NCBI GenBank assembly: GCA_002269645.1
Contig: NIVC01000384.1
Span: 310,001 to 374,000 of the forward strand
Length of the DNA stretch: 64,000 nt
DNA from: Macrostomum lignano
Taxonomy: Eukaryota
Direction: 5' to 3'
Positions 10,986 through 61,947 of this stretch are shown here, piece by piece. Numbering within the stretch: position 1 is the stretch's first letter; every line of letters begins with the position of its first letter. The notes beneath the pieces are model-generated. The model saw nothing but the letters and a program-made list of their open reading frames with translations, was not told the DNA's origin and searched no databases. Made by a program: the position numbers and the translations under genes.

Positions 10986-20368
<9,383 letters not shown>

Positions 20369-20734
20369 GCGGGCTGCAGTTGTTGGTGGCCGCTATGGCT
20401 GATACACAAATGCAATAATTAACTGTGTGCGCCCAGTTCACGAGCGGACTGGAAATTTTTTATAACTAAAATCTGCCCTCCGAACCCCCCCCCCCCAAAT
20501 AGACTGAGTGGGGCTGGCCTTATCTGTCCTCGCGCGCGAATTCATTGGCTTTTGGCTTTGTGAACTGCACGCAGGCGTAGGGGGGGGGGGTGGGCGCATG
20601 GGTTAGCTAACTTTAGGGGGCTGCCTAGTTAACCAGCAATCTGCAGATTAGGATAGTTGGGCTTCTTGCATGGTCGCTTTTTCATTAGCTCCCGTGATTC
20701 TACATCTTGACTTTGAGAATGTGTACATGTAAAA

Positions 20735-38000: not shown

Positions 38001-39256
38001 CTTCTTGTGCGAATTGCCGGCGCCCCTGTGCCCAACGTCCATGGTTTTGCGCTTCACCCAGTGCCGCCTGTACGTCACCGATACGTCGTTGCGAAGGTGC
38101 GGTGACATCGAAGTGATGAACAAATACTGCAACTTGAGTGTGCCCACTAGCACCGGAGCGCCCTGCTTGCTCACCATCACCTGCGGGCAGCGGGGTGGGA
38201 CGGAAGCTGGACTGCAGTCTGATCGATTGAGGTCTGTCTCAGTGCATATTCTGTCTGCCTGTCCTATCCCAGCGTCTGCCTGTCCTATCTTAGTGTCTGC
38301 CTGTCCTATCTCAGTGTCTGCCTCAGACTGCCTGTCCTATCTCAGTGTTCGCCTGTCCTATCTCAGTGTCTGCCTGTCCTATCTCAGTGTCTGCCTGTCC
38401 TATCTCAGTGTCTGCCTGTCCTATCTCAGTGTCTGCCTGTCCTATCTCAGTGTCTGCCTGTCCTATATCAGTGTTCGCCTGTCCTATCTCAGTGTCTGCC
38501 TGTCCTATCTCAGTGTCTGCCTGTCCTATCTCAGTGTCTGCCTGTCCTATCACAGTGTCTGCCTGTCCTATCTCAGTGTCTGCCTGTCCTATCTCAGTGT
38601 CTGCCTGTCCTATCTCAGTGTCTGCCTGTCCTATCTCAGTGTCTGCCTGTCCTATCTCAGTGTTTGCCTGTCCTATCTCAGTGTCTGCCTCAGACTGCCT
38701 GTCCTCTCTCAGTGTTCGCCTGTTCTATCTCAGTGTCTGCCTGTCCTATCACAGTGTCTGCCTGTCCTATCTCAGTGTCTGCCTGTCCTATCTCAGTGTC
38801 TGCCTGTCCTATCTCAGTGTCTGCCTGTCCTATCTCAGTGTCTGCCTGTCCCATCTCAGTGTCTGCCTGTCCTATCTCAGTGTCTGCCTGTCCTATCTCA
38901 GTGTCTGCCTGTCCTATCTCAGTGTTTGCCTGTCCTATCTCAGTGTTCGCCTGTCCTATCTCAGTGTCTGCCTGTCCTATCTCAGTGTCTGCCTGTCCTA
39001 TCTCAGTGTCTGCCTGTCCTACCTCAGTGTCTGCCTGTCCTATCTCAGTGTCTGCCTGTCCTATCTCAGTGTTTGCCTGTCCTATCTCAGTGTCTGCCTC
39101 AGACTGCCTGTCCTATCTCAGTGTTTGCCTGTCCTATCTCAGTGTCTGCCTGTCCTATCTCAGTGTCTGCCTGTCCTATCTCAGTGTCTGCCTGTCCTAT
39201 CTCAGTGTCTACCTGCCTGCCTAACTGCCTGTCTGTCTGTCCGTTTGTCTGTCTGC

Positions 39257-39311
<55 letters not shown>

Positions 39312-42300
39312 CTGTCTGTCTGTCTGTCTGCCTGTCTGTCTATCATGCAGTAGCAGTCAGGCCAAACCTGCAGTATTTTGACGCCCTTGCTCTCCTGACT
39401 GCGCAGCGGCATGAGGCTGGCTTTGCCAATCAGCTGCCGGCTTTTCGGATCGCGCAGCTCGATTTCGAAAGCGGTGGACTCTAGGTCGAATGTGTCAACC
39501 TGGCGGTCAGGTATTGAAAATGAAATCAGTTTAGTGAATCAGTGAATCAGTTATTCACTACTGTTGAAAGAAACCTGGCACTGTTGACTCACCTGGAACA
39601 CCAGGTGACTATCCGGGGTGCAAAGTTCGCCAAAGGTAGCCTGAGGTCGAGTACGGCAGTCGGCGTCCGGGTCTGACGAGTCGTCATTTGGAGGCGTCGA
39701 CTCGCCGATGCTGCACACGGTGGCGGGCAGCCTGTGAAGATCAGTAGCCAATTGAGTCAAGGCAGGTGTACAACTTTACCATGTACAATTTTAGGATGTT
39801 CACCTTCAGGATGCACAACTTCAAAGATGTACGCTTGTACACTTTCAGGATGCAAACCTGGAGCATTTACAACTTCAGAATGTACTATTTCAGGATGCAC
39901 CCCGTCAGGATGTACAAAATTAGGAGCTACAACTTCAGGATGTACATCTGCAGAGTGTACAGCTTTAGGAAGTAAAGCTTCATGCAAGGATCTCACTTTA
40001 TCTAACGCTTCCTGTAATTCTGTAACAGCTCACCTGCCAGCCAGGTATTCGTCGCCATTGAGCGACTCTTCCAGTTCGCCCATCTGAATAGGCAGAGGCG
40101 CAGAGCTGCCGCCGCCACCTCCAGCGTTGCTATTGTTGGCCGCAGCGGCTGAGGCAGCGGAGGTCATCGAGTTGGCAGCGTCCGAATAAGCAGCCGAGCC
40201 GGTGCTCTCGGCTATGGAGTGCGACCAGCAGGACGCCAGGGCAGTGCGGACCGCGCGTCGGTAATTGGGCCGGAACCATTCCAGACAGCCGGGCATCAGG
40301 TGCAGATGCACCTGAGTCTGGCCGGTCAGCCAGCCACGCTGGATGCGCTTCTGCTGCTGTAGGGGCGAGAGGGAAAGTGTACATGTGAACTTTGGAGGGC
40401 GTACGCAGACACGCACTCATACACACATTCATAACACGGTGTACAGCAGCCCCGATTTTCTAATCGTCAGGCATGTACACTCACTGTGCCTTCTGGGTTG
40501 GGCCTCATGGGTGGGAATCGCGATCTCAACGCACGAAATCGAATCAATGTAGTATGTACATTGACAGGTGGGCTACAGAGACTATGCACATTGGGAAGGT
40601 GGGCTACAGAGAGTATGTACATTGGGAAGGTGGGCCACTGAGACTATGTACATTGGGGAGGTGGGCCACAGAGAGTATGCACATTGGACAGGTGGGCCAC
40701 AGAGAGTATGTACATTGGACAGGTGGGCCACAGAGAGTATGCACATTGGACAGGTGGGCCACAGAGAGTATGTACATTGGGGAGGTGGGCCACAGAGACT
40801 ATGTACATTGGGGAGGTGGGCTACAGAGACTATGTACATTGGGGAGGTGGGCCACAGAGACTATGTACATTGGGGAGGTGGGCTACAGAGACTATGTACA
40901 TTGGGGAGGTGGGCCACAGAGACTATGTACATTGGGGAGGTGGGCTACAGAGACTATGTACATTGGGGAGGTGGGCTACAGAGACTATGTACATTGGGGA
41001 GGTGGGCCACAGAGACTATGTACATTGGGGAGGTGGGCTACAGAGACTATGTACATTGGGGAGGTGGGGCCGAGAAGACGGACAGTGGACACCTAAAGGC
41101 TGAGCCACTCACACTGCCATCCTGAGCAATAACGACGCCGAACTCCGGCACGTCAACGTCGGGTTGAACAGCCCCCGTCAGGCAGTCCATCAGGGCCAGG
41201 CGCCTAGGGTTGCGAAACGATTCCCAGTGTGAGATGCACAGCGTCACTTCGCTGTCCTCGTCGTTGGGATTGTGGCAACGGGCGAGGAAGAACCTGCGAA
41301 TCGTGGGGCATTCTCATTGGATTAACGAATTCATAGTTAATATCAATAGAATAATGGGAAAATAGGTTTAAATAGGTTTTTATCAGCTTGAAGCAGTGAA
41401 CGCTATAAGTTAGCTACATTTTTATGTTCTAGCACAAAATTTCAATTTGCACTTAGCCTCGAAATTGGCTCGCTCGATTAATTAAATATCATACGCGAGG
41501 GTGAGAAATAAGGTTAAAAATCATAGACTGGCTGAAGAACTGACTTCAAAAATCTCAAACTCAAACATTAAGAGTGACACAAAACACGCACACACAGGCT
41601 CAGACAAAGTGTACAACACGACTGGGACTTTCTCATTGCCAGGCATGTACAACACACTGTGCCTTGGGGGTTGGCCCGCATTAGTTTGAATGGTATGACA
41701 ACCGCTCACGAAATTGAACCAGAGGTCGAGGCGCGATGCGTTTATCGTAGATAAGGGTGGCAGTGTAATTATAAAATGCCGTAATTGAGATGACTAATGA
41801 GGTAACGAAAGCGAGATTGTTTGTGCTCTAGCTGCCTTCAGAAGCGCTAGTGTCAATGAGGGCCAGGGTGATTTTATTGAGTGAGTCGGTGAGTGAGTGA
41901 GTGACTGACTGACTGTCCGACTCAGTGAGTGACTTGACTGACTGACTGACTGAGGACTGACTGAGTGAGTGAGTGAGTGACTGAGTGAGTGAGTGACTGT
42001 CTGACTCAGTGAGTGACTTGACTGACTGACTGAGTGAATGAGTGAATGAGAGAGTGACTGGGTGAGTGACTGAGTGACTGACTGACTGAGGACTGAGTGA
42101 CTGAGTGAGTGACTGACTGACTGAGTGCGTGACTGAGTGAGTGACTGACTGAGGACTGAGTGACTGAGTGCGTGACTGAGTGAGTGACTTGACTGACTGA
42201 CTGACTGAGGACTGAGTGACTGAGTGAGTGACTGAGTGACTGACTGACTGGGTGAGTGACTGAGTGACTGACTGACTGGGTGAGTGACTGAGTGACTGAC

Positions 42301-43069
42301 TGACTGGGTGAGTGACTGAGTGACTGACTGACTGGGTGAGTGACTGAGTGACTGACTGACTGGGTGAGTGACTGAGTGACTGACTGAGCGACTGAATGAG
42401 CGAGTAAGTAAGCAATCATTTGGAAGGTCTGAGCCCCAGAAGTTGGCACCCTGCCAGAGTACCAGTAACTCGAGAGTGGGGGCCCTTTCCGTTTTGGCGG
42501 AGTTAAGCCGTGCAATAGCTGAGATCCTTAATGCCCTTAGGTGAATTTCCGACCTACCCTGGCTGACTCAGGGCTGGTCCACGCTGTCAACCCCACCGTT
42601 TATCAGCAGCAACAACAATTGACGGTGACTCAGACACATCTAATTCGATGCTTGATATTAGGTTATAAAAACTCACCATTAAATGTAAAAAGAAACTGCT
42701 CAAAAACTCGCTGTGCTTAAAAATCATAAAAAAAGCTTTCTTTACAGAGAGGCAACAGTCGAAGCACTCTCTCAGATATCCATGCGCGCCATCTAACCTG
42801 TAGGCAACATTGCCAAGCGGCAGCGGGATCTGCACGTCCCGGCCAAATTCAATGTAGTCGGCAGTCTTCTGGGCAATAGGCATGGACTTGGCCTTCTCCA
42901 CATTCCAGGCGCCCAGCTGGTTGCAGTCGCCAACTAGGTAACAGGCAACATCGGGGGCGCCTAAGCTGCCTAACAGCTGGTCTGGCACTCGAACTCGGAA
43001 TGGCACCACCACCTGGTGCTGCCGAGGACCGCATGATGAACTGCTGCTGGTAGTTGACTTAGTTGCCAT
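35033..43069 (-). CDS. GPCPD1: Glycerophosphocholine phosphodiesterase (CBM20 plus GDPD domain, GDE5 type)
   Basis: Exons 43069-42798, 41293-41113, 40356-40034, 39731-39593, 39499-39368, 38180-37893, 36919-36692 and 35716-35033, all GT-AG and phase-compatible. Motifs: LVGDCNQLGAWN, GWLTGQTQVHL, DVGHRGAG, RENTI, GADFVEFDVQFSKD, IPVVFHD, FPSLRQCLE, IEIKYP, KQNRYPVLFLT, GVDALIYD. Confidence 0.93.
35830..36690. repeat. 22-bp intronic minisatellite (TGTGACCCCTATCAGTCCCACC)
   Basis: Read directly; it begins at the GPCPD1 donor at 36691. Confidence 0.95.
36994..37196 (-). mobile_element. Dispersed SINE-like element, long copy, intronic
   Basis: About 200 bp aligns closely by eye to 48921-49128. 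It contains two hairpins and a TG-rich segment. Confidence 0.75.
37280..37725. repeat. 18-bp intronic minisatellite (GAGATATGAAATCTCTCA)
   Basis: Read directly. Confidence 0.96.
37766..37843 (-). other. Degenerate tRNA-like sequence (SINE head or tRNA pseudogene)
   Basis: A-box TAGCCTAGTGG (37835-37825), B-box-like GGCTCGATTCT (37788-37778) and an anticodon-like loop CTGATGA. The T-arm and acceptor stems do not pair properly. Confidence 0.45.
38245..39345. repeat. 21-bp intronic minisatellite (GTCTGCCTGTCCTATCTCAGT) followed by (TCTG)n
   Basis: Read directly. Confidence 0.95.
39770..39970. repeat. Degenerate short repeat (TCAGGATGTACA core), intronic
   Basis: Read directly. Confidence 0.6.
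40400..40548 (-). mobile_element. Diverged SINE-like family copy
   Basis: GTGTACAGCAGCCCCGATTTTCTAATCGTCAGGCATGTACAC followed by TGTGCCTTCTGGGTTGGGCCTCA. Confidence 0.65.
40555..41070. repeat. 31-bp intronic minisatellite (GGGCCACAGAGACTATGTACATTGGGGAGGT)
   Basis: Read directly. Confidence 0.95.
41578..41725 (-). mobile_element. Diverged SINE-like family copy
   Basis: GTGTACAAC...CCAGGCATGTACA followed by TGTGCCTTGGGGGTTGGCCC; B-box-like GGTTCAATTTC on the minus strand near 41720. Confidence 0.62.
41880..42410. repeat. (GAGT/GACT)n compound microsatellite, intronic
   Basis: Read directly. Confidence 0.93.
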
Positions 43070-43389
43070 GCTGGTTTTAAACGTGTCAAGCTGAGCTGTC
43101 CATTTTGAAAAACAAAAACTTTTACTAAATTATTAATAGGTTGCTTTTTTACTACGGATATACTGGCGCTTATTCAAACAAGCAAACTAACGATATCAGT
43201 TGCAGTGGTAGCCTTGGCTCTGGAAAAAAAATGCATCGCGAAAAGTATAAGTAAAATAATCCGAAAATCGTTTTTTCTTTCACCTACAATTAGGAGCAAT
43301 AGCAATTAGGAAAAGTAGTGGTATTAGTTTTATAATGGTTTTATTATACACCCGTTATAGGAAAAAACAATGCACTTTGTAAGCTAAAC

Positions 43390-45237: not shown

Positions 45238-48200
45238 TCAAGCCACGGTGGTCGCCTGTCCCGACTGCAACGGCTGTTTGAATATCCAGCCGCCCTCCTC
45301 ATCTTTGATGAAGTATTTCACCGGAAATTGGAGGCCGTGATCGCGACGATATCTTTCGCAATTCCGTTGACGATCTTCCAGCTGTATGATGGTAAACAAT
45401 ACAAATGAAATTATTGATAGAATGAGTGCTACTTAAGTATGCTACTTATAAAGGGGAAAAAAAGATTAGACACGGTTAGACAAGGATAATACAAGTAATA
45501 ATATAACGGATTTACAGTTAGATTAAGACACACACAGGTGAGATAGCACAGGTAGATTAAGACAGACACATGTGAGATAGCACAGGTAGATTAAGACACA
45601 CAGATGAGATAGCACAGGTAGATTAAGACACACAGATGAGATAGCACAGGTAGATTAAGACACAAACAAGTGAGATAGCACAGGTAGATTAAGACACACA
45701 GATGAGATAGCACAGGTAGATTAAGACAGACACATGTGAGATAGCACAGGTAGATTAAGACACACAGGTAAGATAGCACAGGTAGATTAAGACACACAGA
45801 TGAGATAGCACAGGTAGATTAAGACACACAGGTAAGATAGCACAGGTAGATTAAGACACACAGATGAGATAGCACAGGTAGATTAAGACACAGAGGTGAG
45901 ATAGCACAGGTAGATTAAGACACAGAGGTGAGATAGCACAGGTAGATTAAGACACAGAGGTGAGATAGCACAGGTAGATTAAGACACACAGGTGAGATAC
46001 CACAGGTAGATTAAGACACACAGGTGAGATAGCACAGGTAGATTAAGACACACAGGTGAGATAGCACAGGTAGATTAAGACACACAGGTGAGATAGCACA
46101 GGTAGATTAAGACACACAGGTGAGATAGCACAGGTAGATTAAGACACTCAGGTGAGATAGCACAGGTAGATTAAGACACAGAGGTGAGATAGCACAGGTA
46201 GATTAAGACACACAGGTGAGATAGCACAGGTAGATTAAGACACAGAGGTGAGATAGCACAGGTAGATTAAGACACACACAGGTGAGATACCACAGGTAGA
46301 TTAAGACACACAGGTGAGATACCACAGGTAGATTAAGACACACAGGTGAGATACCACAGGTAGATTAAGACACACAGGTGAGATAGCACAGGTAGATTAA
46401 GACACACAGGTGAGATAGCACAGGTAGATTAAGACACACAGGTGAGATACCACAGGTAGATTAAGACAGACACAGATGAGATAGCACAGGTAGATAAAGA
46501 CACACAGGCGAGATAGCACAGGTAGATTAAGACAGAGGTGAGATAGCACAGGTAGATTAAGACACACAGGTGAGATAGCACAGGTAGATTAAGACACAGA
46601 GGTGAGATAGCACAGGTAGATTAAGACACACAGGTGAGATAGCACAGGTAGATTAAGACACACAGGTGAGATAGCACAGGTAGATTAAGACACACAGGTG
46701 AGATAGCACAGGTAGATTAAGACACTCAGGTGAGATAGCACAGGTAGATTAAGACACACAGGTGAGATAGCACAGGTAGATTAAGACACAGAGGTGAGAT
46801 AGCACAGGTAGATTAAGACACACACAGGTGAGATACCACAGGTAGATTAAGACACACAGGTGAGATACCACAGGTAGATTAAGACACACAGGTGAGATAC
46901 CACAGGTAGATTAAGACACACAGGTGAGATACCACAGGTAGATTAAGACACACAGGTGAGATACCACAGGTAGATTAAGACACACAGGTGAGATACCACA
47001 GGTAGATTAAGACACACAGGTGAGATACCACAGGTAGATTAAGACACACAGGTGAGATACCACAGGTAGATTAAGACAGACACAGATGAGATAGCACAGG
47101 TAGATAAAGACACACAGGCGAGATAGCACAGGTAGATTAAGACACACACAGGTGAGATAGCACAAAAAGATAAGCAAAAAAGTACGCATAGACAATAATC
47201 AAAGACCGACAAACCTTTTTCTTTTCCTCGGTCGCCTTGGCAATGTCGCCGGCTCGCAGTGCCTCGGTAACGGACTCCCACAGTCTGCGCGACTCGTAGG
47301 CGCGCTGCTGATGGCGCGGCCGGACCCGCTTTGGCAGGGCGGGCAGCTGGGCAACGTGCAGCTGCCGGCGCTCACCAGTGGCCGGATTCTCGAATTCCAG
47401 TTGGCCGCTCCATTCGCCGTTAACTCGACAGGCGACGCCGCCAGCTGGGCTGCGAACTTCGGCGCTGATGCGGTGCAGCTTGCCGCCATAGAATGGCTTG
47501 GTGTGGAATATCACCGAGGCGGAGAACCGGGACTTGGCGCAGCTGATGCTCACCTGACAGCGGCAATGAGGCAGGAGTGAGGCATCTCACAAGGGGCGAT
47601 TCTACAGTAGCAGAATGTAGGATAGGGGCGATTCTACAGTAGCAGAATGTAGGGTAGGGGCGATTCTACAGTAGCAGAATTCAGGATAGGGGCGAGTCTA
47701 CAGTAGCAGAATGTAGGGTAGGGGCGATTCTACAGTAGCAGAATTCAGGATAGGGGCGAGTCTACAGTAGCAGAATGTAGGGTAGGGGCGATTCTACAGT
47801 AGCAGAATTCAGGATAGGGGCGAGTCTACAGTAGCAGAATGTAGGGTAGGGGCGATTCTACAGTAGCAGAATGTAGGGTAGGGGCGATTCTATAGTATAA
47901 TTTAGGGTAGGGGCGATTCTACAGTAGCAGAATTCAGGATAGGGGTGATTCTACAGTAGCAGAATTTAGGATAGGGGCGATTCTGCAGTTGAATCACACA
48001 GGGTCAGGCGCGATTCTGCAGTTGAATCACACAGGGTCAGATGCGATTCTGCAGTTGAATCACACAGGGTCAGATGCGATTCTGCAGTTGAATCACACAG
48101 GGTCAGATGCGATTCTGCAGTTGGAGCACACAGGGAGCACATTGGAGCATACAGGGAGCACATTGGAGCACACAGGGAGCACATTTGAGCACACAGGGAG

Positions 48201-51200
48201 CACATTGGAGCACATTGGAGCACACAGGGAGCACATTGGAGCACACAGGGAGCACATTGGAGCACACAGGGAGCACATTTGAGCACACAGGGAGCACATT
48301 GGAGCACATTGGAGCACATTGGAGCACACAGGGAGCACATTGGAGCACACAGGGAGCACATTTGAGCACACAGGGAGCACATTGGAGCACATTGGAGCAC
48401 ACAGGGAGCACATTGGAGCACACAGGGAGCACATTGGAGTACACAGGGAACACATTGGAGCACACAGGGAGCACATTGGAGCACACAGGGAGCACATTGG
48501 AGCACAAACCTTGTCTCCCAGTTCGACCCAGGGCACGGTGAGAATAGACCTGGCGTAGGCGCTGGGCAGCTGGATGCTGTAGACCTCGCCGTGGCCAAGC
48601 AGATGCAGCTGCAGTTTACCAATCATGTTGACACCGATACTCATTCCCATGAACTTGCTCTTAGTATAGATGCTGGCATTCAGCCAAATCTGCTTCTGCG
48701 GACACTCCAGATAGAATGCGGTCACTGGCGGATGGTGCGAAACCTGCTCGGCCGTGTACACCAACTGGGTGCTGCCGTCGCCTAGTAACCAGGAGCAGTG
48801 GAAAGTCTCGCCAATTAGCGGGTTGTACGGCTTCTTGGCGATAGCGCCCTGAGTGAGTTGGTTGTACAGTATTAATTTTAATTAGAGGTAGGGAGCCGTG
48901 TGCACCCTAGCGCACTTTAAGAGGCATTACTGCCCATATCACCGACTCCCCTGAGCAGGCGCACAAGCACGCGGATACTTACGCAGTCATACGCACAGGC
49001 ACACACTCACAGGAGTTTACAGCGGCCCTGACTTTATTTATTGTTAGGCATGTAATGTACACTTCACTGCGCCTTGGGGGTTGGCCCTCAAGGGTGTAAA
49101 TTGCACGAGCAGAGCCAAGCCGAGATTCCAGTTTACGAGTAGACATCTAAGATAAAAATCACCTGACCAGTTTCTATAATAGCGATTTATTGCACAACAA
49201 TATTCTAATTTATCATCTATACTACTCACCCTTGGCTATCTTTAGTATGGCATGCAAAATTAGCATAAACAAAATGTTTACTACCAGGTGGTTGCACAAT
49301 AACAAAATGCATTTTTTACTTCTATTCGTTTTTTATAGCACTAATTGCCAGTATTTAACATATTCCCTGTCAGTGGAAATGAAGGCGATTTTCAGAGAGT
49401 ATCAGAGGCGATTTTCAGAGAGTATCAGGGGCGATTTTCAGAGAGTATCAGGGGCGATTTTCAGAGAGTATCAGGAGCGATTTTCAGAGAAGATCAGGGG
49501 CGATTTTCAGAGAGTATCAGGGGCGATTTTCAGAGAAGATCAGGGGCGATTTTCAGAGAGTATCAGGAGCGATTTTCAGAGAAGATCAGGGGCGATTTTC
49601 AGAGAGTATCAGGAGCGATTTTCAGAGAGTATCAGGAGCGATTTTCAGAGAAGATCAGGGGCGATTTTCAGAGAGTATCAGGAGCGATTTTCAGAGAGTA
49701 TCAGGAGCGATTTTCAGAGAGTATCAGGGGCGATTTTCAGAGAGGATCAGGGGCGATTTTCAGAGAGGATCAGGGGCGATTTTCAGAGTATCAGAGGCGA
49801 TTTTCAGAGAGTATCAGGGGCGATTTTCAGAGAGGATCAGGGGCGATTTTCAGAGAGTATCAGGGGCGATTTTCAGAGAGGATCAGGGGCGATTTTCAGA
49901 GAGTATCAGGGGCGATTTTCAGAGAGGATCAGGGGCGATTTTCAGAGAGGATCAGGGGCGATTTTCAGAGTATCAGAGGCGATTTTCAAAGAGTATCAGG
50001 GGCGATTTTCAGAGAGTATCAGTGGCGATTTTCAGAGAGTATCAGGGGCGATTTTCAGAGAGTATCAGGGGCTTCTAATAATAACTTCCACCCGTACTCA
50101 TCTTTTAGTGTTGGAACAGAGTTTAGCCTACTTAGGGTCCCAATGTCCCAATACCTATTTTTGCACAGAAAGACCCTTTAAACACAAATTAATAATGCAT
50201 TTATAATGCATTTATATATGGGATATTCAAAACAGATGTTATAATGCTATTATAAAGATGTTTTTAAAAGACTAATAACCAATAATGCATAGGAAAAAAG
50301 CCAAGCAATTAATAAGTTATTTAATGGAAAACAACACGACGCTAAAACAGCTGGTTAATTAGGCGCACTCACCTTCTTCGGGTTAAAAGTATTCTAAGAA
50401 AAAGCGACATTGTGTGTTAGAGGTTAGAACTGATGAAAAAGCGCTGCTATACGAGTCTAAGACACAAATATTTTAAACAATAAAATAAAAACATACATAC
50501 AAGTGAATTATTGCATTTTAAAAATACTTTAGTGAGACAAAAGCGCGCAAGACACACACGAGAGCGTTTATTCAATTGTGCTCAAGTCAAACGGGTAGGC
50601 TTGTGCGCAATAAAATCATTGTTGCGTAACTGGACTTTTCAAGATTGAGAATCATCATGACTATGAACTGTCAAGATTATGAACTGTCAAGATTATGAGC
50701 TGTCAAGATTATGAACTGTCAAGATTATGAACTGTCAAGATTATGAACTGTCAAGATTATGAACTGTCAAGATTATGAACTGTCAAGATTATGAACTGTC
50801 AAGATTATGAACTGTCAAGATTATGAACTGTCAAGATTATGAACTGTCAAGATTATTAACTATCAAATATTAAGAACTAATAAAGATGATGAATTATCAG
50901 GATTATGAATTAACGGCAGCTTATGAAAAGTTAAAATTGTGATGCTTGGATCTCCTCAAAGTTAAGACAGGATAAATATAATAACACTGAGACTCACCTT
51001 CCTGCCAGCGTGAAAGCTGGTCAGAAACCACTCCAGCACGGCAACCATACGGGACTCGGGATCCGGCAGGTCGGCAACCCGCAGGAACAGCTCCGGATGA
51101 AGCATGGAATCTGCGAACATCTCCAGTAGGGAGCGCTTCTCCAAGATGAAGGTCGGCAGCACAACCCTAGTAAGATCCATGCCGAGTTTGAGCTGCTGCA

Positions 51201-54200
51201 ACAGGTGCAAGATCACCGATTTGTGCTCTTCCACGCTGCCGAGATCCGACTCCAGCTCCGCCGGGCCGTCCTCTTCATCGTCGGCGTGCGGCACCGGAAA
51301 CAGCGGCGCCTCCAGCATCTCTGGCAGCGGCACCGAGGACAGGGGCCCGGGCGCCGACAGCTGCGGCGAGACCGACGTTGACGACGAAGACGCCACGGCT
51401 GGCAGATTGGTGGCACTGCGGGGCGGCAGATTAGTGGCTTGACCTGTCTGCCTACCAGACTGACAACCAATCCCACTGACTTATCTACCTGACAGCCTAC
51501 TAGCTTACCTACCTGCCAACCTACTAGCCTACCTACCTGCCAACCTACTAGCCTACCTACCTGCCAAACTACTAGCCTACCTACCTGCCAACCTACTAGC
51601 CTACCTACCTGCCAAACTACTAGCCTACCTACCTGCCCACCTACTAGCCTACCTACCTGCCAACCTACTAGCCTACCTACCTGCCAACCTACTAGCCTAC
51701 CTACCTGCCAACCTACTAGCCTACCTACCTGCCAACCTACTAGCCTACCTACCTGCCAACCTACTAGCCTACCTACCTGCCAACCTACTAGCCTACCTAA
51801 CTGACAACCTACTAGCCTACCTACCTGCCAACCTACTAGCCTACCTAACTGCCAACCTGAAAAACTACTAAACTAGCAACCTACCTATTAAAACTTCTAA
51901 CATATAACCAATCAACTTACCTACCAAAAAATCTAAGCTATCTACCTATCATTTATCTACCCTACCTTACCCACCTATCTCCGTCAACCGTCCCTAGCGG
52001 TTTCTCTCCGCTGCGTGTACCAGTCTAGGTTTTTATACTGACTGCATGCCTGTGTGTAAGGGTGCCTGTTTTTCTACTAGCTAACCTACAACCTACCTAC
52101 CTACCTACCTACCCACCTACCTACCTACCAACCTACCTACCTACCCACCAACCAACACATATGAATAACTAATCTATACTTTAGAAAATTTGGACTCTCA
52201 AATGTCCCAGCGCCAATTCTAAACCATGGCCAGAACAGTAGTTATTCAGACAAAAACCAGCGAAGCAAAATTGAGAATTTATTATCGCAACATTAGAAGT
52301 CGACTTAGCAACTGAAGGTGAGTACATGTTTTATGCAGATGGGAAGCCACTAGCGGAGCTTGGGGGAGAGAGAGAGCATAATCTTGACAGGTAGGCAGGC
52401 CGCACCAATCCATTAATTAATTAAAGCTAATTATCCCGAATCACTGACAGCCATATAAGGTCAGAGTTGCACAGACAGTAGAAGAGCAATAATCTAAGTT
52501 GCTATGGAAACCAACTGAGAAACTCAATCACACTAACTAGCTGTCCTAGACTTGCAGACGAGTGTCCATTAATTTTTAACAGTCAGTCAGTCAGCTGGCA
52601 ATACTGAGTATTTCACATATCACAGAGTGCACAGCGGCCCTGACTTTCTAATCGTCAGGCGCATGTACACTCTCTGCGCCTTGGGGGCTGGCCCTCATTG
52701 GTGCGAAAAGCATTACAACAACCCTCAGTCGGTCAATTTTCCTCATCATCATCTGTCCTCTCACCTGAGCGATTTCTGATCATTATTATTAGACCTGACG
52801 CCGGAGCCCGCAGTCAGGGAGGACGCGGCGCGCAGGTGCTGCAGCACAGGCAAGTCAGAGGCGCTCAGGTGCAGCATGTCGGATGATTCGTCAACTGCCA
52901 GCTGCGGAGTAAAAATGAAGGACATACCGAGTCGTAAATGCACTTTTTCGTTTTCAACTCCACAGTTAACTCAGCCGGTTGATTGGCAAACTAACTTACA
53001 TGCACGCGCAAGCTGAGCACACAGACAATAGAATGCCTTTAGTTAGCAAAGTGAAAGTATAAGTTCCTTTCTGTTTCGTAACTATTCTAACTATTGAAAT
53101 AAGAGAGCCACGGCCTCTCTAGGAAAAGTGGGACTGTGGGAGAAGTGGCTGAGGACAGCCAGATCAGTCCAGTAACTGAAGGGGATATTTAACACGGCTG
53201 AGAGGTGGGTAGGGGTGTGGAAGAAGAGTATTAACCCCTCCCCTCCCGCATGGAAAGCGCTCATCGTTGGACTTGGGACCGATGCCAACCAATTGGAAGT
53301 CGGCCAAAGACGGATTTAATCCCACTCAAATTCAACCTACTGTGTCTGTGAGCCTCCCCTCCCCCTCTTCTGCCTGCCCGTCTGGATAAATATAATAGAG
53401 GAAACACTCTTGCCGCCTGCCTAACCCAACTAAAAATGAGTTCTGGCGCGCCATCGGATTCAAAATAGGGACTTGAGGTACTCTTGTTGCTAGCATAATC
53501 TGAAACAGAACCGGAAATCCCCTAGGACAGAATTGGAAGAATTGGAGAAACAAACGCATAAGCAGTCGAGATGAGCAACCGGGGGGAGGACATTGAGAAT
53601 CGAGAGAAGTATTTCCGAGCAACTGTTCGCTTCCGTTGCTGCTGCTAAGCACTGGCCTAAATCCCGAGAGGAGCGAAGGAAGTGGTAGATGAAGAGGCAG
53701 AGCCGGGCGAGGGGAGGTGGGCCAAGATGGGGGCAGACGCGGGAGGCTGGAAGCGGGGTTTTTTATTTTATTTGAGTACGCGCTCAGGCCTAGGCGAACA
53801 GGCGGACAGACAAGCAAGTGAATGGTTTGTGTGTAGCACTCGGGGTTGGGGCCCACACTCATGATGCGCGATGAGGCCCAGGCGGATCGGAGGGAGACAC
53901 ATAAAATAAACATGAGCAAGGCTAGGATCGGCTAGGCTCGGCGGCAGGGCGAGGACGCCACTGGCGTTAGGGAAGTTCTTTGGTCGAACTGGACTACAAA
54001 CAGATCGATACCAATATATCCAATTAGTGGCTAGTCAGTACAAAATGCAACAAAGCGAAACCTTGGCGAGTAGGTGAATAACTGGATTAATCAGTGCCTT
54101 TATAAGTGCCTCCAACATCCACCACAGCTGGCAGAAGTCCTGAATCCACATCAGTAAGACAATCTTTATCTGTTTATAAGTGCCTCCAGTATCCACCACA

Positions 54201-57200
54201 GCTGGCAGAAGTCCTGAATCCACATCAGTAAGACAATCTTTATCTGTTTATAAGTGCCTCCAACATCCACCACAGCTGGCAGAAGTCCTGAATCCACATC
54301 AGTAAGACAATCTTTATCTGTTTATAAGTGCCTCCAACATCCACCACAGCTGGCAGAAGTCCTGAATCCACATCAGTAAGACAATCTTTATCTGTTTATA
54401 AGTGCCTCCAACATCCACCACAGCTGGCAGAAGTCCTGAATCCACATCAGTAAGACAATCTTTATCTGTTTATAAGTGCCTCCAACATCCACCACAGCTG
54501 GCAGAAGTCCTGAATCCACATCAGTAAGACAATCTTTATCTGTTTATAAGTGCCTCCAACATCCACCACAGCTGGCAGAAGTCCTGAATCCACATCAGTA
54601 AGACAATCTTTATCTGTTTATAAGTGCCTCCAACATCCACCACAGCTGGCAGAAGTCCTGAATCCACATCAGTAAGACAATCTTTATCTGTTTATAAGTG
54701 CCTCCAACATCCACCACAGCTGGCAGAAGTCCTGAATCCACATCAGTAAGACAATCTTTATCTGTTTATAAGTGCCTCCAACATCCACCACAGCTGGCAG
54801 AAGTCCTGAATCCACATCAGTAAGACAATCTTTATCTGTTTATAAGTGCCTCCAACATCCACCACAGCTGGCAGAAGTCCTGAATCCACATCAGTAAGAC
54901 AATCTTTATCTGTTTATAAGTGCCTCCAGTATCCACCACAGCTGGCAGAAGTCCTGAATCCACATCAGTAAGACAATCTTTATCTGTTTATAAGTGCCTC
55001 CAACATCCACCACAGCTGGCAGAAGTCCTGAATCCACATCAGTAAGACAATCTTTATCTGTTTATAAGTGCCTCCAACATCCACCACAGCTGGCAGAAGT
55101 CCTGAATCCACATCAGTAAGACAATCTTTATCTGTTTATAAGTGCCTCCAACATCCACCACAGCTGGCAGAAGTCCTGAATCCACATCAGTAAGACAATC
55201 TTTATCTGTTTATAAGTGCCTCCAACATCCACCACAGCTGGCAGAAGTCCTGAATCCACATCAGTAAGACAATCTTTATCTGTTTATAAGTGCCTCCAAC
55301 ATCCACCACAGCTGGCAGAAGTCCTGAATCCACATCAGTAAGACAATCTTTATCTGTTTATAAGTGCCTCCAACATCCACCACAGCTGGCAGAAGTCCTG
55401 AATCCACATCAGTAAGACAATCTTTATCTGTTTATAAGTGCCTCCAACATCCACCACAGCTGGCAGAAGTCCTGAATCCACATCAGTAAGACAATCTTTA
55501 TCTGTTTATAAGTGCCTCCAACATCCACCACAGCTGGCAGAAGTCCTGAATCCACATCAGTAAGACAATCTTTATCTGTTTATAAGTGCCTCCAGTATCC
55601 ACCACAGCTGGCAGAAGTCCTGAATCCACATCAGTAAGACAATCTTTATCTGTTTATAAGTGCCTCCAGTATCCACCACAGCTGGCAGAAGTCCTGAATC
55701 CACATCAGTAAGACAATCTTTATCTGTTTATAAGTGCTAATATCAGTAATAGTCAGGAATTATCACTAATATCAGGAATTAGACAAGCTAATGGAGCGGC
55801 AATTAGCCAAGACTTTTTAAACAAATTAAACTAGCTGTATGATAACCCTGGGGATAGGAAATTCAATTATCAGGAACAGAGTGGCGCAAATTAGCATTGG
55901 CAACGTGCCAGCAGTGCTGACGACTGCCTTTTGAAAGACAAAAAAAGATTAATCAAATTCACAAAGTCGATTAAATTGCGTTCAAAAAGCGAAAAAAGAT
56001 CCGTGCCACAGCAAGATAAGGAAAGCGAAGGAAAACCGCAATTTAAAAAATGAGGTCAAATAATACGCACAAAAAACTTAAATTCGAATTTTTTAAACAA
56101 AATACTGCAAAGTGTACTTATTACTCTTCTGAAAAGCAAATTTTCCTGCCAGACATTCTCCTGCCAGTGACATTTGCCCGTCAGTGACATACGACTGTCA
56201 GTGACATTTGCCTGTCAGTGACATTTGCCTGTCAGTGACATTTGACTGCCAGTGACATTTGCCTGTCAGTGACATTCGACTGTCAGTGACATTTGCCTGT
56301 CAGTGACATTCGACTGTCAGTGACATTTGCCTGTCAGTGACATTCGACTGTCAGTGACATTTGCCTGTCAGTGACATTCGACTGTCAGTGACATTTGCCT
56401 GTCAGTGACATTCGACTGTCAGTGACATTTGCCTGTCAGTGACATTCGACTGCCAGTGACATTTGCCTGTCAGTGACATTCGACTGTCAGTGACATTTGC
56501 CTGTCAGTGACATTCGACTGTCAGTGACATTTGCCTGTCAGTGACATTCGACTGTCAGTGACATTTGCCTGTCAGTGACATTTGCCTATCAGTGACATTT
56601 GCCTACCAGTGACATTTGCCTACCAGTGACATTTGCCTATCAGTGACATTTGCCTGCGAACCGTAGCTTTAAAGCTGAATTTAGACTACGCGTACATCCA
56701 AACCCGAATTTAAACCTCAAACTAAACGCTAACTATGTTCTTTATGCGTATAATGTGGCTACCCCAATACTAAAGTAGCAAGTGAAGTTAATAACTGTTA
56801 AAAAATGAGATAAAAAACAAGGCCCAGCATAAACTTACAGACACAGGTATCGCGTCTTTAAATTTGCTACTATTACTAAAAAGGTATAAGAAAAAATGCA
56901 ACAGAGTTTAATTGGCAAACACATCTAACCTCCCGGGGACAGGCACCTGGCTAATGCAAGTTAAAAAGCAATTTTAGCATACAATAGCTAGGCACAGCAA
57001 AAAACTGTACAGCAACCATGCAAAACTATCTTTTGTTAAAGCAATAACCAACTATGACTTAGTTAAACTATTCAATACTAAGGCAAACACACATACACAC
57101 ACACACAACTTACACTCCATATCAATATTTGAGGCTTTCCGTAGTTGAACATTTGATACAGAGAATTCACTAATAGACACAATGATAGTGAGGCACAGTA

Positions 57201-60200
57201 TGGTCTAAGTCAAGCACAGATGAGAACTGATAAGCTGATAAATGGAAGTTGATTAGAGAAGTTACGAGACTAAAGATAGCGAGTAGCAACTAAAAGCAGA
57301 CCTTTACTGAGCGCTTAGAAGCGGATATATTTATGAATTTTCATCGGCTGTTTACGTCGGCAATGAAGGGGCGGGCTAGTGAAACTGCGCGTGAAACAGA
57401 ACAAAAAAGATAGTAAAAAACATTAATGCTGTATCAAGTTATAGAATTGCGCAAAACAACTGATACAGGCTAGATATTGCATTACTTAACAGATTAGGAT
57501 TAAAATACTGCAGTTGGAAGCTACTGACTTTAGTCTTAGCTTTAATTTAATTTTATACTATATTTGCATTATTTTATATACTGCTATATTAATTATCACA
57601 TCGAAAGCAAACCGCTCTAGGAAACTAAGAGCATAGCAACTGGGGATCTGGAAGGCTGGCCCAGCAATTGAGGATCTGGGAGGCTGGCCCAGGAACTGGG
57701 GATCTGGGAGGCTGGCCCAGCAACTGAGGATCTGGAAGGCTGGCCCAGGAACTGAGGATTTGGGAGGCTGGCCCAGCAACTGAGGATCTGGGAGGCTGGC
57801 CCAGCAACTGAGGATCTGGAAGGCTGGCCCAGGAACTGAGGATCTGGGAGGCTGGCCAAGGAACTGAAGATCTGAGTGGCTGGCCCAGCAACTGAGGATC
57901 TGGGAGGCTGGCCCAGCAGGATCTGGGTGGCTGGCCCAGCAACTGAGGATCTGGGAGGCTGGCCAAGGAACTGAGGATCTGGGTGGCTGGCCCAGCAACT
58001 GGGGATCTGGGAGGCTGGCCCAGCAACTGAGGATCTGGGAGGCTGGCTCAGCAACTGAGAATCTGCGAAGTTGGCTCAGCAACTGATCTGGGAGGCTCGC
58101 CAAGGAACTGAGGATCTGGGTGGCTGGCCCAGCAACTGGGGATTTGGGAGGCTGGCCCAGCAACTGAGGATCTGGGAGGCTGGCCTAGCAACTCATACTT
58201 TACAAGAACGTGAGGAGTAAACTCACCGAACAGGGGTTCAGCTTCAACCGGGCGGTAGTCAGACTCTCTCTGCAGGACTCCAACGATCTGATAGCGGCCA
58301 GAGCAGTCGCCTTAGCAACCAGGACGTCTCTATCCAGACAGGCCAGCTGACGAGACTGCTGCTCAGCCGCCTCAGTGGCAGCCGGTTTACCACCTGGCAG
58401 AGAATATATCAGCGACTCCAGACCGGAAAATGCTGCCCCAAGGCTGACTGACAGCTCGCGCAAACTCGGCGCCGAAGCGTCGCCAGCGCCAGGCGGACGA
58501 CTGCCAGCGCCGCTGGTTTGATAAGCGACAGGAGCTGGGAAGTAGCTGACGTTGCCGCTCGAATGCGATTTGCTCACCTTGCGGTTGGCAACCGGGGCGA
58601 GGCGATCAGACTGCTCCATCGGCTGCTCAGAATGATCGGCAGATTGCGATTTCTGATGCAGACCCTGCTGCTGTTGCTGCTGCTGCTGGTCTTGCAGGGC
58701 CTGGTCGCAGGACTGACAGCCGTAGATATCGGGCAGAGAAGCCGGGTTGAACTGGAATTAAATGGTTTTAAAATTGACACAGTCGGATCAATGATTGAAT
58801 TTCTGGGATAATTGGGACGTATTTTCAATTCGGATTTTAAATATGACCTTCCTAATGCGAGTGAAATTCAAGATCCCAAGTTCTGTGAAAGTAAAAACTG
58901 CGGAATTACAGAAAATTTAATAAAATTATGAAAATCTGACCCCATATTCGGTAAAATTATGGAAATCTGACCCCATATTCTGTAAAATTATGGAAATCTG
59001 ACCCCATATTCTGTAAAATTATGGAAATCTGACCCCATATTCTGTAAAATTATGGAAATCTGACCCCATATTTAGTAAAATTATGGAAATCTGACCCCAT
59101 AGTCGGTAAAATTATGGAAATCTGACCCCATATTCGGTAAAATTATTGACATCGGATCCCATATTTGAATCTTGCTTGCAAATATTTGCTTTCAAATATT
59201 ATAAAGAAGCCTGTTCTGATTCTTGAATTCAAAAAAAAACTCTCGTCAATTCCATTTCAAAGTATTCCTTTTAAGCGAAACCTACTTTAGCAAAAAGCAT
59301 CTCTCTGTGTTTGAGAATTTGTTTCAATTTTATTTCTTTAGCGAAAGCTTTCAAGCAACTAACATCACCCCAAACTCCGTTACATGTATACAAAGGAAAA
59401 CTTGATCAACTAAAAAGCATAGCCACTCACACTGCCAAGCTGTTTGCACTGATCTGAACAGAATTCCGCTACAGCTCGGATTCTCGTCACCCAATACTGC
59501 CTCTCCTTGGCGTCGTTGGCTGCGGGAATATTTGCACTACTTACAGTAGGTCGGTAAAAGAATAAATTCATGGCTGTGAGGATATTTGCACTCTACTAAC
59601 AGTAGGTCGGTAAAATAATAAATTCATGGCTGTGGGGATATTTGCACTCTACTTACAGTAGGTCGGTAAAAGAATAAATTCATGGCTGTGGGGATATTTG
59701 CACTCTACTTACAGTAGGTCGGTAAAAGAATAAATTCATGGCTGTGGGGATATTTGCACTCTACTAACAGTAGGTCGGTAAAAGAATAAATTCATGGCTG
59801 TGGGGATATTTGGACTCTACTTACAGTAGGTCGGTAAAAGAATAAATTCATGGCTGTGGGGATATTTGCACTCTACTTACAGTAGGTCGGTAAAAGAATA
59901 AATTCATGGCTGTGGGGATATTTGCACTCTACTTACAGTAGGTCGGTAAAAGAATAAATTAATGGCTGCGGGAATATTTACACTCTCTAAGAATCAATTA
60001 ATTTCTAATATAAAAGTAAATGGATATACAGACTACGCCATTAAACTACGCAGATGCAATAGTCTTAAAAAACATTTTGCATACAGGCAAAATAAACATG
60101 AAAAAAGCAGACCGCTCACCCCTTAGTTTGAATACTTCTCCGGTGTTAGCGTTGACGCTAAAAGTTTGTGAATCCTCTTCGCTAGGAGTGACAATTGCGA

Positions 60201-61947
60201 ACTGAAAAAATATGTGCATTTTAAATATACACGCGTGAGCATTGAGTACTGTACAGTTTAAGCATTTTAACTTTAAGCTGACTGCTAAACTTATCTATAA
60301 ATTATAATCAACGAGCAACACAGTGCTTTAGTAGGCCGTATGTTAATCACAATCAGTCAGAACTAATAGTAATTCAATTAATGTTAACTAAAACAAGGCT
60401 CACAGTCAACGGCAGTTCGCCACGCCTCTTCAGACCTCTGTGCTCTTCTTTCTGCAAATTAATAATCAACCATATAGTATGAATCCTGTGACAGACAAGT
60501 TTGATAAAAATGAAAAATTATCGAGCTTGCCTCATAGTACTCAAGTAATCCGGCCTCAGAGTTGAGCACAACCCAGCGTGGCTGGTAACCCTTGACAACG
60601 TTTGTAAATTTTAACAAATTACCCTCAATGCGCTTCCTGCAATACAGTGTTAAAGATATGAATTATACGCTCCATGATTGTCAATCTCCAACTGCCTGAT
60701 TGTCACTCTCCAACTGCCTGATTGTCACTCTCCTATCTGCCTGCCTGTCACTTTCCCACTGCCTACCTGTCACTCTCCCACTGCCTGACTGTCACTCTCC
60801 TATCTGCCTGACTGTCACTCTCCTATCTGCCTGACTGTCACTTTCCCACTTTCCCACTGTCTGACTGTCACTCTCCTAACTGCCTGACTGTCACTCTCCT
60901 AACTGCCTGACTGTCACTCTCCTAACTGCCTGACTGTCACTCTCCTATCTGCCTGACTGTCACTCTCCTATCTGCCTGACTGTCACTCTCCTATCTGCCT
61001 GACTGTCACTCTCCTATCTGACTGACTGTCACTTTCCCACTGCCTACCTGTCACTCTCCCACTGCCTGACTGTCACTCTCCTATCTGCCTGACTGTCACT
61101 CTCCTATCTGCCTGACTGTCACTTTCCCACTGCCTACCTGTCACTCTCCCACTGCCTGACTGTCACTCTCCTATCTGCCTGACTGTCACTCTCCTATCTG
61201 CCTGACTGTCACTCTCCTATCTGCCTGACTGTCACTCTCCTATCTGCCTGACTGTCACTTTCCCACTTTCCCACTGTCTGACTGTCACTCTCCTAACTGC
61301 CTGACTGTCACTCTCCTAACTGCCTGACTGTCACTCTCCTAACTGCCTGATTGTCACTCTCCTAACTGCCTGATTGTCACTCTCGTAACTGCCTGACTGT
61401 CACTCTCCTAACTGCCTGACAGTCCCTCTCCCACTGCCTGCCTGTTACTCTGCTAACTGCCTGACTGTCACTCTTCCACTGCCTGACTGTCCCTCTCCCA
61501 CTGCCTGATTGTTACTCTGCTAACTGCCTGACTGTCACTCTGCTAACTGCCTCATAGTCATAGTCACTCTCAAACTGCCTGACTGTCACTCTGCTAACTG
61601 CCTCATAATCATAGTCACTCTCCCACTGATTTGTTCTCTCTTGATTGTCTCTTGCCCAGTGCCTAGTTGTCAATATTTTTTGCTATCTGAATTAAAATAA
61701 AAACAAAAAACAAATGGCCACTCACCTTAAGCACAGCAACTCTTCTTCTTTTTCAAATTTCTACAAGTAAGAAAGAATTTAAACAAAAAGACCTTAGTAG
61801 CATTCTCAAGAATAAACAAAGCTGAAAAAACAAATAAAGATACCAAGCATTTACCTTTGCTTGTTGCATAACCAATTTTAATTGTTGTTTTTCAAACTGT
61901 GTGAGATTTTGCATCTCAGCCAGGGAATTATCAAAGTCAGTGTCCAT
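45238..61947 (-). CDS. Oxysterol-binding protein-related protein, ORP9/10/11 class (PH domain plus ORD), with an extra N-terminal helix
   Basis: Exons 61947-61855, 61760-61726, 60636-60531 (GC donor), 60451-60404, 60201-60120, 59519-59431, 58751-58227, 52901-52765, 51415-50998, 48848-48510, 47553-47215 and 45381-45238. PH motifs: [46 protein letters not shown] motifs: [79 protein letters not shown]. Confidence 0.9.
45530..47160. repeat. 32-bp intronic minisatellite (GATTAAGACACACAGGTGAGATAGCACAGGTA)
   Basis: About 50 units are read directly. Confidence 0.96.
47588..48505. repeat. Three abutting intronic minisatellites: 32-bp (GGGGCGATTCTACAGTAGCAGAATGTAGGGTA), 33-bp (GATTCTGCAGTTGAATCACACAGGGTCAGATGC) and 21-bp (GGAGCACACAGGGAGCACATT)
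   Basis: Read directly; together they fill the intron 47554-48509. Confidence 0.93.
48921..49128 (-). mobile_element. Dispersed SINE-like element, long copy, intronic
   Basis: Closely similar to 36994-37196. Confidence 0.75.
49385..50072. repeat. 23-bp intronic minisatellite (GCGATTTTCAGAGAGTATCAGGG)
   Basis: Read directly. Confidence 0.95.
50655..50910. repeat. 16-bp intronic minisatellite (GATTATGAACTGTCAA)
   Basis: Read directly. Confidence 0.93.
51490..51860. repeat. 24-bp intronic minisatellite (CCTACTAGCCTACCTACCTGCCAA)
   Basis: Read directly. Confidence 0.93.
52620..52712 (-). mobile_element. Partial SINE-like family copy
   Basis: GTGCACAGCGGCCCTGACTTTCTAATCGTCAGGCGCATGTACAC followed by TGCGCCTTGGGGGCTGGCCCTCA. 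Confidence 0.68.
53226..53327 (-). ncRNA. Degenerate twister-ribozyme-like motif
   Basis: The minus strand reads UAA-AUCC-GUC, a P3-like stem GCCGAC/GUUGGC, then CGGUCCCAAGUCC, and later GAGGG. This is the order of elements in a P1-type twister. P2 and P4 pair imperfectly. Confidence 0.35.
54104..55738. repeat. Highly homogeneous 74-bp intronic tandem array, about 22 copies
   Basis: Unit: GTGCCTCCAACATCCACCACAGCTGGCAGAAGTCCTGAATCCACATCAGTAAGACAATCTTTATCTGTTTATAA. Confidence 0.97.
56165..56655. repeat. 17-bp minisatellite arranged as 34-bp dimers (CAGTGACATTTGCCTGT / CAGTGACATTCGACTGT)
   Basis: Read directly. Confidence 0.95.
57635..58192. repeat. 28-bp intronic minisatellite (GCTGGCCCAGCAACTGAGGATCTGGGAG)
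   Basis: Read directly. Confidence 0.94.
58920..59165. repeat. 31-bp intronic minisatellite (TAAAATTATGGAAATCTGACCCCATATTCGG)
   Basis: Read directly. Confidence 0.92.
59520..59985. repeat. 56-bp intronic minisatellite containing a copy of the adjacent 3' splice site
   Basis: About 8 units. The minus strand has GCAAATATCCCCACAG|CC, against the real acceptor GCAAATATTCCCGCAG|CC at 59520. Confidence 0.93.
60675..61625. repeat. ~23-bp intronic minisatellite (CTGCCTGACTGTCACTCTCCTAT)
   Basis: Read directly. Confidence 0.94.

Follow-up and report, generated by a model that had tools for sequence, protein, structure and literature searches.

An SHD1-like helix encoded by two small 5′ exons of an ORP10/11-type gene in Macrostomum lignano

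Structure and identity of the gene

The 64,000-nucleotide stretch of Macrostomum lignano DNA analyzed here (GenBank assembly GCA_002269645.1, contig NIVC01000384.1, positions 310,001 to 374,000; hereafter the window, with its first letter as position 1) contains, on the minus strand, a gene encoding an OSBP-related protein (ORP) of the ORP10/11 type. The first two coding exons of this gene are small and AT-rich and encode an N-terminal helix located directly before the PH domain. As judged from sequence comparisons across non-vertebrate orthologues, the helix family to which it belongs closely resembles the first Slp homology domain element (SHD1), i.e., the Rab-binding helix found at the start of rabphilin, RIM, and Slp proteins.

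Coding exon 1 (61855..61947, minus strand, as are all features of this gene; 93 nt) starts with an ATG at 61947-61945, which is preceded by an in-frame TAA at 61980-61978; it ends in the donor AAG/GTAAAT (the slash marks the splice point) and encodes the first two thirds of the helix. Coding exon 2 (61726..61760; 35 nt) has the acceptor TTACTTGTAG, ending in TTGTAG, and the donor TTAAG/GTGAGT; this exon encodes the end of the helix and a linker, plus 2 nt of the codon for Arg43, which is split across the join of exons 2 and 3. The span coding for the SHD1-like helix (Leu15-Leu42; 61728..61905) is interrupted by intron 1 (61854-61761). The PH domain starts in exon 3 (60531..60636; acceptor TGTATTGCAG; Pfam PH, E = 3.6e-12) and continues through exon 4 (60404..60451) and exon 5 (60120..60201) to exon 6 (59431..59519), which encodes its C-terminal helix. 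A preliminary description of this DNA, made from the letters alone, had proposed that two small AT-rich exons with suitable splice sites join the PH exon in frame; both the sites and the product were confirmed here, exons 1-3 joined in frame giving exactly the peptide of that description, and G+C content was indeed low in exon 1 (0.35) and exon 2 (0.31), as compared to 0.44-0.54 in the following exons (upstream DNA, 0.26).

An exhaustive HMMER scan covering 1.84 billion representative proteins identified a 746-aa UniProt entry from M. lignano, A0A1I8FXJ8 (“Oxysterol-binding protein”), as identical over residues 1-150, and the translation of exons 1-6 (61947 to 59431), with exons 4 and 5 each matching, showed zero mismatches to residues 1-151 of this protein, indicating that both small exons are also part of an independent public gene model. 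The donor of intron 3 is GC rather than GT (GAG/GCAAGC, 60529-60530), and this join is borne out by the identity with the public protein. Methionine is absent from the translation of exons 3-6, which therefore require an upstream coding exon. Exons 1 and 2 are coding and conserved and do not represent chance open frames. While the ATG has a weak Kozak context (T at -3), which would fit a prediction artefact or chance frames with the true start elsewhere, such an explanation is very unlikely given the independent public model with the same N-terminus, the need of the Met-less exons 3-6 for an upstream exon, the score of the helix against orthologue helices (32 bits), and intron positions that are kept across phyla, both of which are described below.

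The remainder of the gene, comprising a linker/coiled region and the OSBP-related domain (ORD), was placed at 45238..58757 using a tblastn guide and Pfam Oxysterol_BP; ORD exons were found at 51288-50986, 48875-48504, 47556-47212, and 45381-45241, followed by the stop codon at 45240-45238. The assignment of this gene to the ORP10/11 type, as also made in the preliminary description, is correct. An AlphaFold2 model of residues 1-151 (predicted local distance difference test score, pLDDT, of 93; predicted template modelling score, pTM, of 0.79) had as its closest solved structure in Foldseek the PH domain of human ORP11 (2D9X; 51% identity, 0.9 Å rmsd (root-mean-square deviation) over 102 columns, E = 8e-13), and Pfam PH_8 also matched the PH domain (E = 5e-10). 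The sequence at about 48.7 kb encodes the EQVSHHPP signature of the ORD (Pfam Oxysterol_BP, E = 5.9e-29), a predicted helical linker contains a stretch that can be aligned weakly (E = 0.011) to residues 244-275 in the coil region of ORP11, and orthologues carry names of the ORP11-like type. No FFAT motif was found in A0A1I8FXJ8 and nine orthologues with the patterns [ED][FY][FY][DE][AC]x[ED] and [FY][FY]D[AC]; ORP11 is likewise without an FFAT motif (PMC11302984). The gene thus shares its PH domain, its EQVSHHPP-bearing ORD, and the lack of FFAT with human ORP11 and ORP10 (OSBPL11 and OSBPL10), which are partners of ORP9 at contacts of the endoplasmic reticulum with the Golgi and with endosomes. 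Inside the ORD (50986-51288), A0A1I8FXJ8 leaves the open frame of the window after “...DLTRVVLP”, while the window keeps conserved sequence in one frame; the public ORD is probably mis-spliced or frameshifted at this point, or derives from another copy of the gene.

Several introns of this gene contain tandem repeats. Intron 2 (60637..61725), which separates the helix exons from the PH exon, consists mostly of a minisatellite with a 23-bp unit (60675-61603), which is present in about 40 copies and shows a higher-order period of 371 bp. A 56-bp tandem array (59517-59986; 8.4 copies, 95% matches) adjoins the exon 6 acceptor (59519), and each of its units carries an acceptor-like “ccacag” site, so that the intron contains a row of potential cryptic acceptors. 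A third array, with a 222-bp period (approximately 54038-55727), contains at least eight near-identical 51-aa open frames and is probably a satellite rather than coding.

Conservation and distribution of the N-terminal helix

In the AlphaFold2 model, the helix comprises residues 17-42 (pLDDT of 90-94) and ends three residues before the first PH strand. An alignment of orthologues gave the family consensus L1-[ST]2-x-x-E5-[KR]-x-x-L9-x-x-V12-M13-x-R15-A16-x-E18-F19-x-x-x-E23 ... R29, in which, if each residue is taken to turn the helix by 100 degrees, conserved positions 1, 5, 9, 12, 13, 16, 19, and 23 span an arc of no more than 120 degrees and hence lie on a single face. The 45-residue Macrostomum peptide scored 32.1 bits against a leave-one-out hidden Markov model (HMM) of 27 orthologue helices, with a maximum of 12.1 bits among approximately 1000 shuffles; it diverges from the family in that Arg15 is replaced by Gln (Gln29) and Glu18 by Lys (Lys32).

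The same N-terminal element was present in 31 of the 149 best representatives, which include sponges (Halichondria panicea and Oscarella lobularis), cnidarians (Hydractinia, Paramuricea, and Exaiptasia), molluscs (Pomacea and Bulinus), chelicerates (Limulus, Tachypleus, Stegodyphus, and Euroglyphus), a nematode (Trichuris), a hemichordate (Ptychodera flava), and flatworms (Macrostomum and two schistosome-like sequences). Among these best representatives, the helix was not found in vertebrate-like ORP10/ORP11 or in insect-like sequences; vertebrate ORP10/11 have a low-complexity N-terminus with no SHD1-like helix, whereas in Macrostomum and the non-vertebrate orthologues a conserved helix immediately precedes the PH domain. 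The survey of invertebrate orthologues proposed in the preliminary description thus found the extension in taxa ranging from sponges to a hemichordate, at an unchanged intron position, and the view expressed there that vertebrate ORPs lack the helix held for all vertebrate-like sequences examined. Helix and PH domain were also found in single full-length open reading frames on contigs that barely exceed the coding sequence (754 aa on 2378 bp and 752 aa on 3597 bp), showing that these contigs are transcripts and that both elements are present in one mRNA.

Exon structure is conserved as well. For Pomacea, Limulus, and Ptychodera, isoforms are predicted that begin with an alternative first exon in place of the helix, and the members of these isoform pairs part exactly at the Macrostomum exon boundaries. 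In cnidarian genomic open reading frames, “...EKA[QK]” is followed by an intron whose initial GT coincides in position with the Macrostomum K31/K32 boundary; an intron after “A[KQ]” is common to cnidarian, hemichordate, and chelicerate genes, indicating that the two-exon structure is old. ORP11-like proteins thus had this helix ancestrally in metazoans, and it did not arise as a local novelty of the Macrostomum gene. When a profile of the helix alignment was searched against a set of 5.8 billion proteins, only cnidarian exon-1 fragments, and no other families, were returned. A word-indexed search with the 150-aa N-terminus yielded nine proteins, none of which had the extension, and its place was taken by the exhaustive HMMER search. 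For Fasciola gigantica, tblastn over the 10 kb upstream of the PH exon gave no match to the helix exons better than E of about 10; introns at this location probably exceed the flank searched.

A further difference was seen in the PH strand “GWQxR[W]F”, where Tyr or Phe stands in place of Trp in 35 of 100 sequences without the helix versus 1 of 31 with it; this difference may reflect only the vertebrate lineage.

Comparison of the helix with SHD1 of Rab effectors

The preliminary description had likened the Macrostomum helix to the Rab-binding helix of RIM, rabphilin, and Slp proteins, and this resemblance held at the level of the orthologue family. FYVE_2 (PF02318), which was the only Pfam family matched by many members of the helix family, matched 8 of 28 members (best E = 3e-4), always over profile positions 1-34, i.e., the first helix; with reversed sequences, FYVE_2 matched none of the 28 and no family recurred more than twice. 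A PDB profile search with the helix alignment returned rabphilin-3A (1ZBD_B, E = 0.09), five Slp2-a/Rab27A fusion sequences (E = 0.27), and melanophilin (2ZET_C, E = 0.49), with all of these matches falling on SHD1, while the reversed helix profile returned none of these proteins. Comparison of the ORP helix alignment with 11 SHD1 helices by hhalign gave a probability of 97% (P = 8e-11, score of 48); two of these helices are verified sequences (by the PDB search and in PMC8864489) and the other nine are unverified, which counts against the comparison, but use of the two verified sequences only still gave a probability of 94% (score of 33). Reversal reduced the hhalign probability to 0.7% (score of 11), and 199 of 200 column shuffles scored ≤11.7; the remaining shuffle, which scored 130 over 4 columns, was excluded as a numerical artefact. 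Finally, helices from Pomacea, Bulinus, and sponge-like sequences scored 33-36 bits against an SHD1 HMM, with a shuffle maximum of 13.3.

The ORP consensus matches rabphilin-type SHD1 in register at positions 1, 2, 5, 9, 12, 13, 15, 16, 19, 23, and 29 (L1, [ST]2, E5, L/I9, V12, M/L13, R15, A16, a hydrophobic residue at 19, E23, and R29), and the ORP “R-A-x-x-hydrophobic” falls on the rabphilin “R-A-E-K-M”. This register places ORP E5, V12, M13, and R15 on what we take to be E14, V21, V22, and R24 of melanophilin; for melanophilin D25 and R35, on which Rab27A binding depends, the ORPs offer no clear counterpart (A16 is found at the first, and R29 is offset from the second). The first-helix pattern of the rabphilin-3A/Noc2/RIM domain (Pfam FYVE_2; PDB 1ZBD), L-T-x-E-E-K-x-x-I-x-x-V-I-x-R-A-E-K-M-E-x-x-E...R, is common to the ORP consensus, although the ORP helix has no zinc finger, second helix, or SGAWFF motif, scores below the Pfam threshold, and is followed by a PH domain. 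Slp1/JFC1, Slp2-a, and melanophilin provide a second likeness, as in these proteins a short N-terminal helix, matched in register by the ORP profile, is the main Rab contact and no zinc finger is needed; Slp and Slac2 proteins differ, however, in having “QRD” where the ORPs have “RA”, and in always having SHD2 with its WF dipeptide. Taken as sequence evidence, these comparisons support a close resemblance between the helix family and SHD1 that is both in register and direction-specific.

The reading best supported by this resemblance is that the ORP helix may bind a GTPase through SHD1 only, in cooperation with the PH domain, and we consider Rab binding by the helix family a tentative reading whose chances fall just short of even. 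Studies of known effectors indicate that the first helix can be sufficient: Slp1/JFC1, which is zinc-finger-less, binds Rab8A mainly through SHD1 (PMC2018616), SHD1 alone is reported to be necessary and sufficient for recognition of Rab27A-GTP by melanophilin (PMC9120966), and a 28-residue SHD1 peptide of Slp2-a, when tethered to Rab27A, takes up the docking pose of the full complex (PMC8864489). The preliminary description had observed that no zinc finger follows the helix, and CxxC was in fact absent from the first 120 residues of ten full-length members; this absence is not decisive, as Slp1 and Slp2-a have no zinc finger and SHD1 alone suffices in melanophilin, and it weighs less than had been feared.

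A number of points nevertheless weigh against Rab binding, the lack of CxxC among them. No FYVE_2 match reaches the Pfam gathering score (best of 21.4 versus 27.2 bits), with 34 of the 118 profile positions present; the PDB E-values of 0.09-0.5 are singly non-significant, and an unrelated MtrG helix had a better one (E = 0.0024). The SHD2 motif [ST]G[ADE]W[FY], which was sought anywhere in the ten full-length members, was not found, and in known effectors SHD2 contributes affinity and specificity. Because SHD2, the defining feature, was tested for and is absent, the ORP helix is not a member of the FYVE_2/SHD family. All of the support consists of sequence similarity over about 30 helical residues. 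In addition, the Macrostomum helix itself scored 4.2 bits against the SHD1 HMM and reached an hhalign probability of 24% (P = 8e-4), which is essentially non-significant, with the conserved Arg replaced by Gln29. As a possible stand-in for the SHD2 dipeptide, we also considered the PH-domain “RWF”, which was rejected: WF is present in 21 of 31 helix-bearing versus 55 of 100 helix-less sequences, and Macrostomum has WV.

The Macrostomum peptide taken alone resembles SHD1 only in a degenerate form and showed no match of its own to a Rab-binding family. Its comparison with Pfam gave no FYVE_2 match at E up to 10, and the matches that this single sequence did yield in Pfam and PDB (Gp-FAR-1, designed helical proteins, and troponin T) were dismissed as noise; the SHD1 signal appears only with the orthologue profile. 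Since the Macrostomum copy has drifted (Arg15 to Gln and Glu18 to Lys), it may depart from the rest of the family in affinity or in partner, and we regard Rab binding by this copy as less probable than for the family as a whole.

The high AlphaFold2 confidence for the helix (pLDDT of about 92, pTM of 0.79) could also mean that its conserved face is packed on the PH domain rather than free. The helix might then be an appendage of the PH domain, packing on the long C-terminal PH helix (with a role in autoinhibition or stabilisation), or a dimerisation module as in SKAP-Hom, with no Rab partner and a convergent likeness to SHD1. A helix with pLDDT of 90-94 in a 151-residue fragment with this pTM does agree with a helix whose placement against the PH domain is fixed, a SKAP-Hom fragment (1U5E) that combines helical dimerisation with a PH domain is among the Foldseek hits, and the biology of ORP9, ORP10, and ORP11 relies on helical dimerisation (PMC11302984). 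However, the known dimerisation coils of ORP9 and ORP11 are located between the PH domain and the ORD and not N-terminal to the PH domain, and the match to SHD1 takes in the polar residues E5, R15, and E23, in register, and is lost upon reversal or shuffling, which would be unexpected for a generic packing helix. The likeness to 1U5E is one of topology alone: although N-terminal helices directly precede the PH domain in both, 1U5E is a four-helix-bundle dimer with 16% identity, no sequence relation, and an rmsd of 11.6 Å, and SKAP-Hom was ruled out as a real structural match. On balance, we consider a PH appendage or dimerisation module less likely than Rab binding, though its main competitor.

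The residues shared with SHD1 also bear on which partner the helix might bind. It could be a docking site for a partner outside the Rab3/8/27 group, such as another small GTPase, a motor adaptor, or a membrane protein, with only ancestry or shape in common with SHD1; the absence of SHD2 and its WF motif, which give known effectors their specificity for Rab27 and Rab3, would agree with such a partner, as would the ORP invariants A16 and E18-F19, which are not found in Slp and Slac2 proteins. The R-A pair and the hydrophobic residue at position 19 are, on the other hand, common to rabphilin (“ARAEKME”), which is the best Rab-effector match, and no second Pfam family recurs among the members of the helix family; a different partner therefore appears improbable, and less credible than a PH appendage.

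Possible role of the helix and other features of the window

If the helix does bind a Rab, it would represent a minimal, SHD1-only site for a GTP-bound exocytic Rab of the Rab3/8/27 group, and together with a PI4P-type PH domain (PI4P, phosphatidylinositol 4-phosphate) it could form a coincidence detector for Rab-GTP and PI4P by which the lipid exchanger is directed to certain carriers or subdomains of the Golgi. The alternative first exons, through the choice of promoter, would then switch this second address on or off. ORP1L is a Rab-recruited ORP whose ankyrin repeats bind Rab7, and it offers a conceptual parallel: a region before the PH domain binds a Rab, and Rab and phosphoinositide define the target membrane, although on the ORP11 side this is a proposal, and ORP1L belongs to another ORP subfamily and uses ankyrin repeats, rather than a single helix, to bind another Rab. 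The PH domains of ORP9 and ORP11 alone target the Golgi weakly (PMC11302984), making a second determinant plausible.

In its broadest form, this proposal would make ancestral metazoan ORP10/11 a direct effector of exocytic Rabs (Rab3/8/27 group), with the SHD1-only helix and the PI4P-binding PH domain as a two-key address for an exchanger of phosphatidylserine (PS) and PI4P on secretory carriers, and with a helix that has a common origin with the first helix of rabphilin, RIM, and Slp proteins, is switched on and off through alternative promoters, and disappeared in vertebrates and insects. As a combined statement, this is less likely than Rab binding by the helix family taken by itself, and we regard it as a speculative scenario that is probably not correct in full. 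The interpretation given in the preliminary description is supported in part; the Rab-targeted exchanger of sterol or PS and PI4P for secretory vesicles that it put forward is a hypothesis as regards Rab binding, the vesicle target, and lipid specificity. ORP10 and ORP11 have been studied almost only in mammals, where they have no FFAT motif and no strong membrane address and depend on ORP9; if the proposal is true, non-vertebrate ORP10/11 gain an independent, GTPase-controlled address, non-vesicular PS/PI4P exchange is tied directly to the exocytic Rab machinery, and the SHD1 helix works as a portable module outside the rabphilin, RIM, and Slp families. The distribution of the helix also provides a tangible example of a domain lost along the vertebrate stem. 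In the literature searched, we found no paper that connects the Slp homology domain or rabphilin with ORP10/11 or OSBP-related proteins; while the gene itself was already annotated, that literature appears to contain no description of an SHD1-like helix in proteins of the ORP11-like type.

The window as a whole is unusually rich in tandem arrays, and it contains three further genes on the minus strand. The gene at 35036-43129 encodes a CBM_20 starch-binding domain (43129-42590, E = 3e-4) and has GDPD exons at 38336-37836 and 35845-35036 (E down to 8e-26); it is a GPCPD1/GDE5-like glycerophosphodiesterase gene. A MITD1-like gene (27369-28561) encodes a MIT domain (E = 5e-10) and a phospholipase-D-like MIT_C domain (E = 2e-33). 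The third gene (approximately 17000-20392) encodes an RRM protein (RRM_1, E = 7.5e-16) that looks similar to hnRNP-Q/R (SYNCRIP); its open frame at 18088-17777 runs from RRM-like sequence straight into a microsatellite-encoded “TDRQ” repeat.

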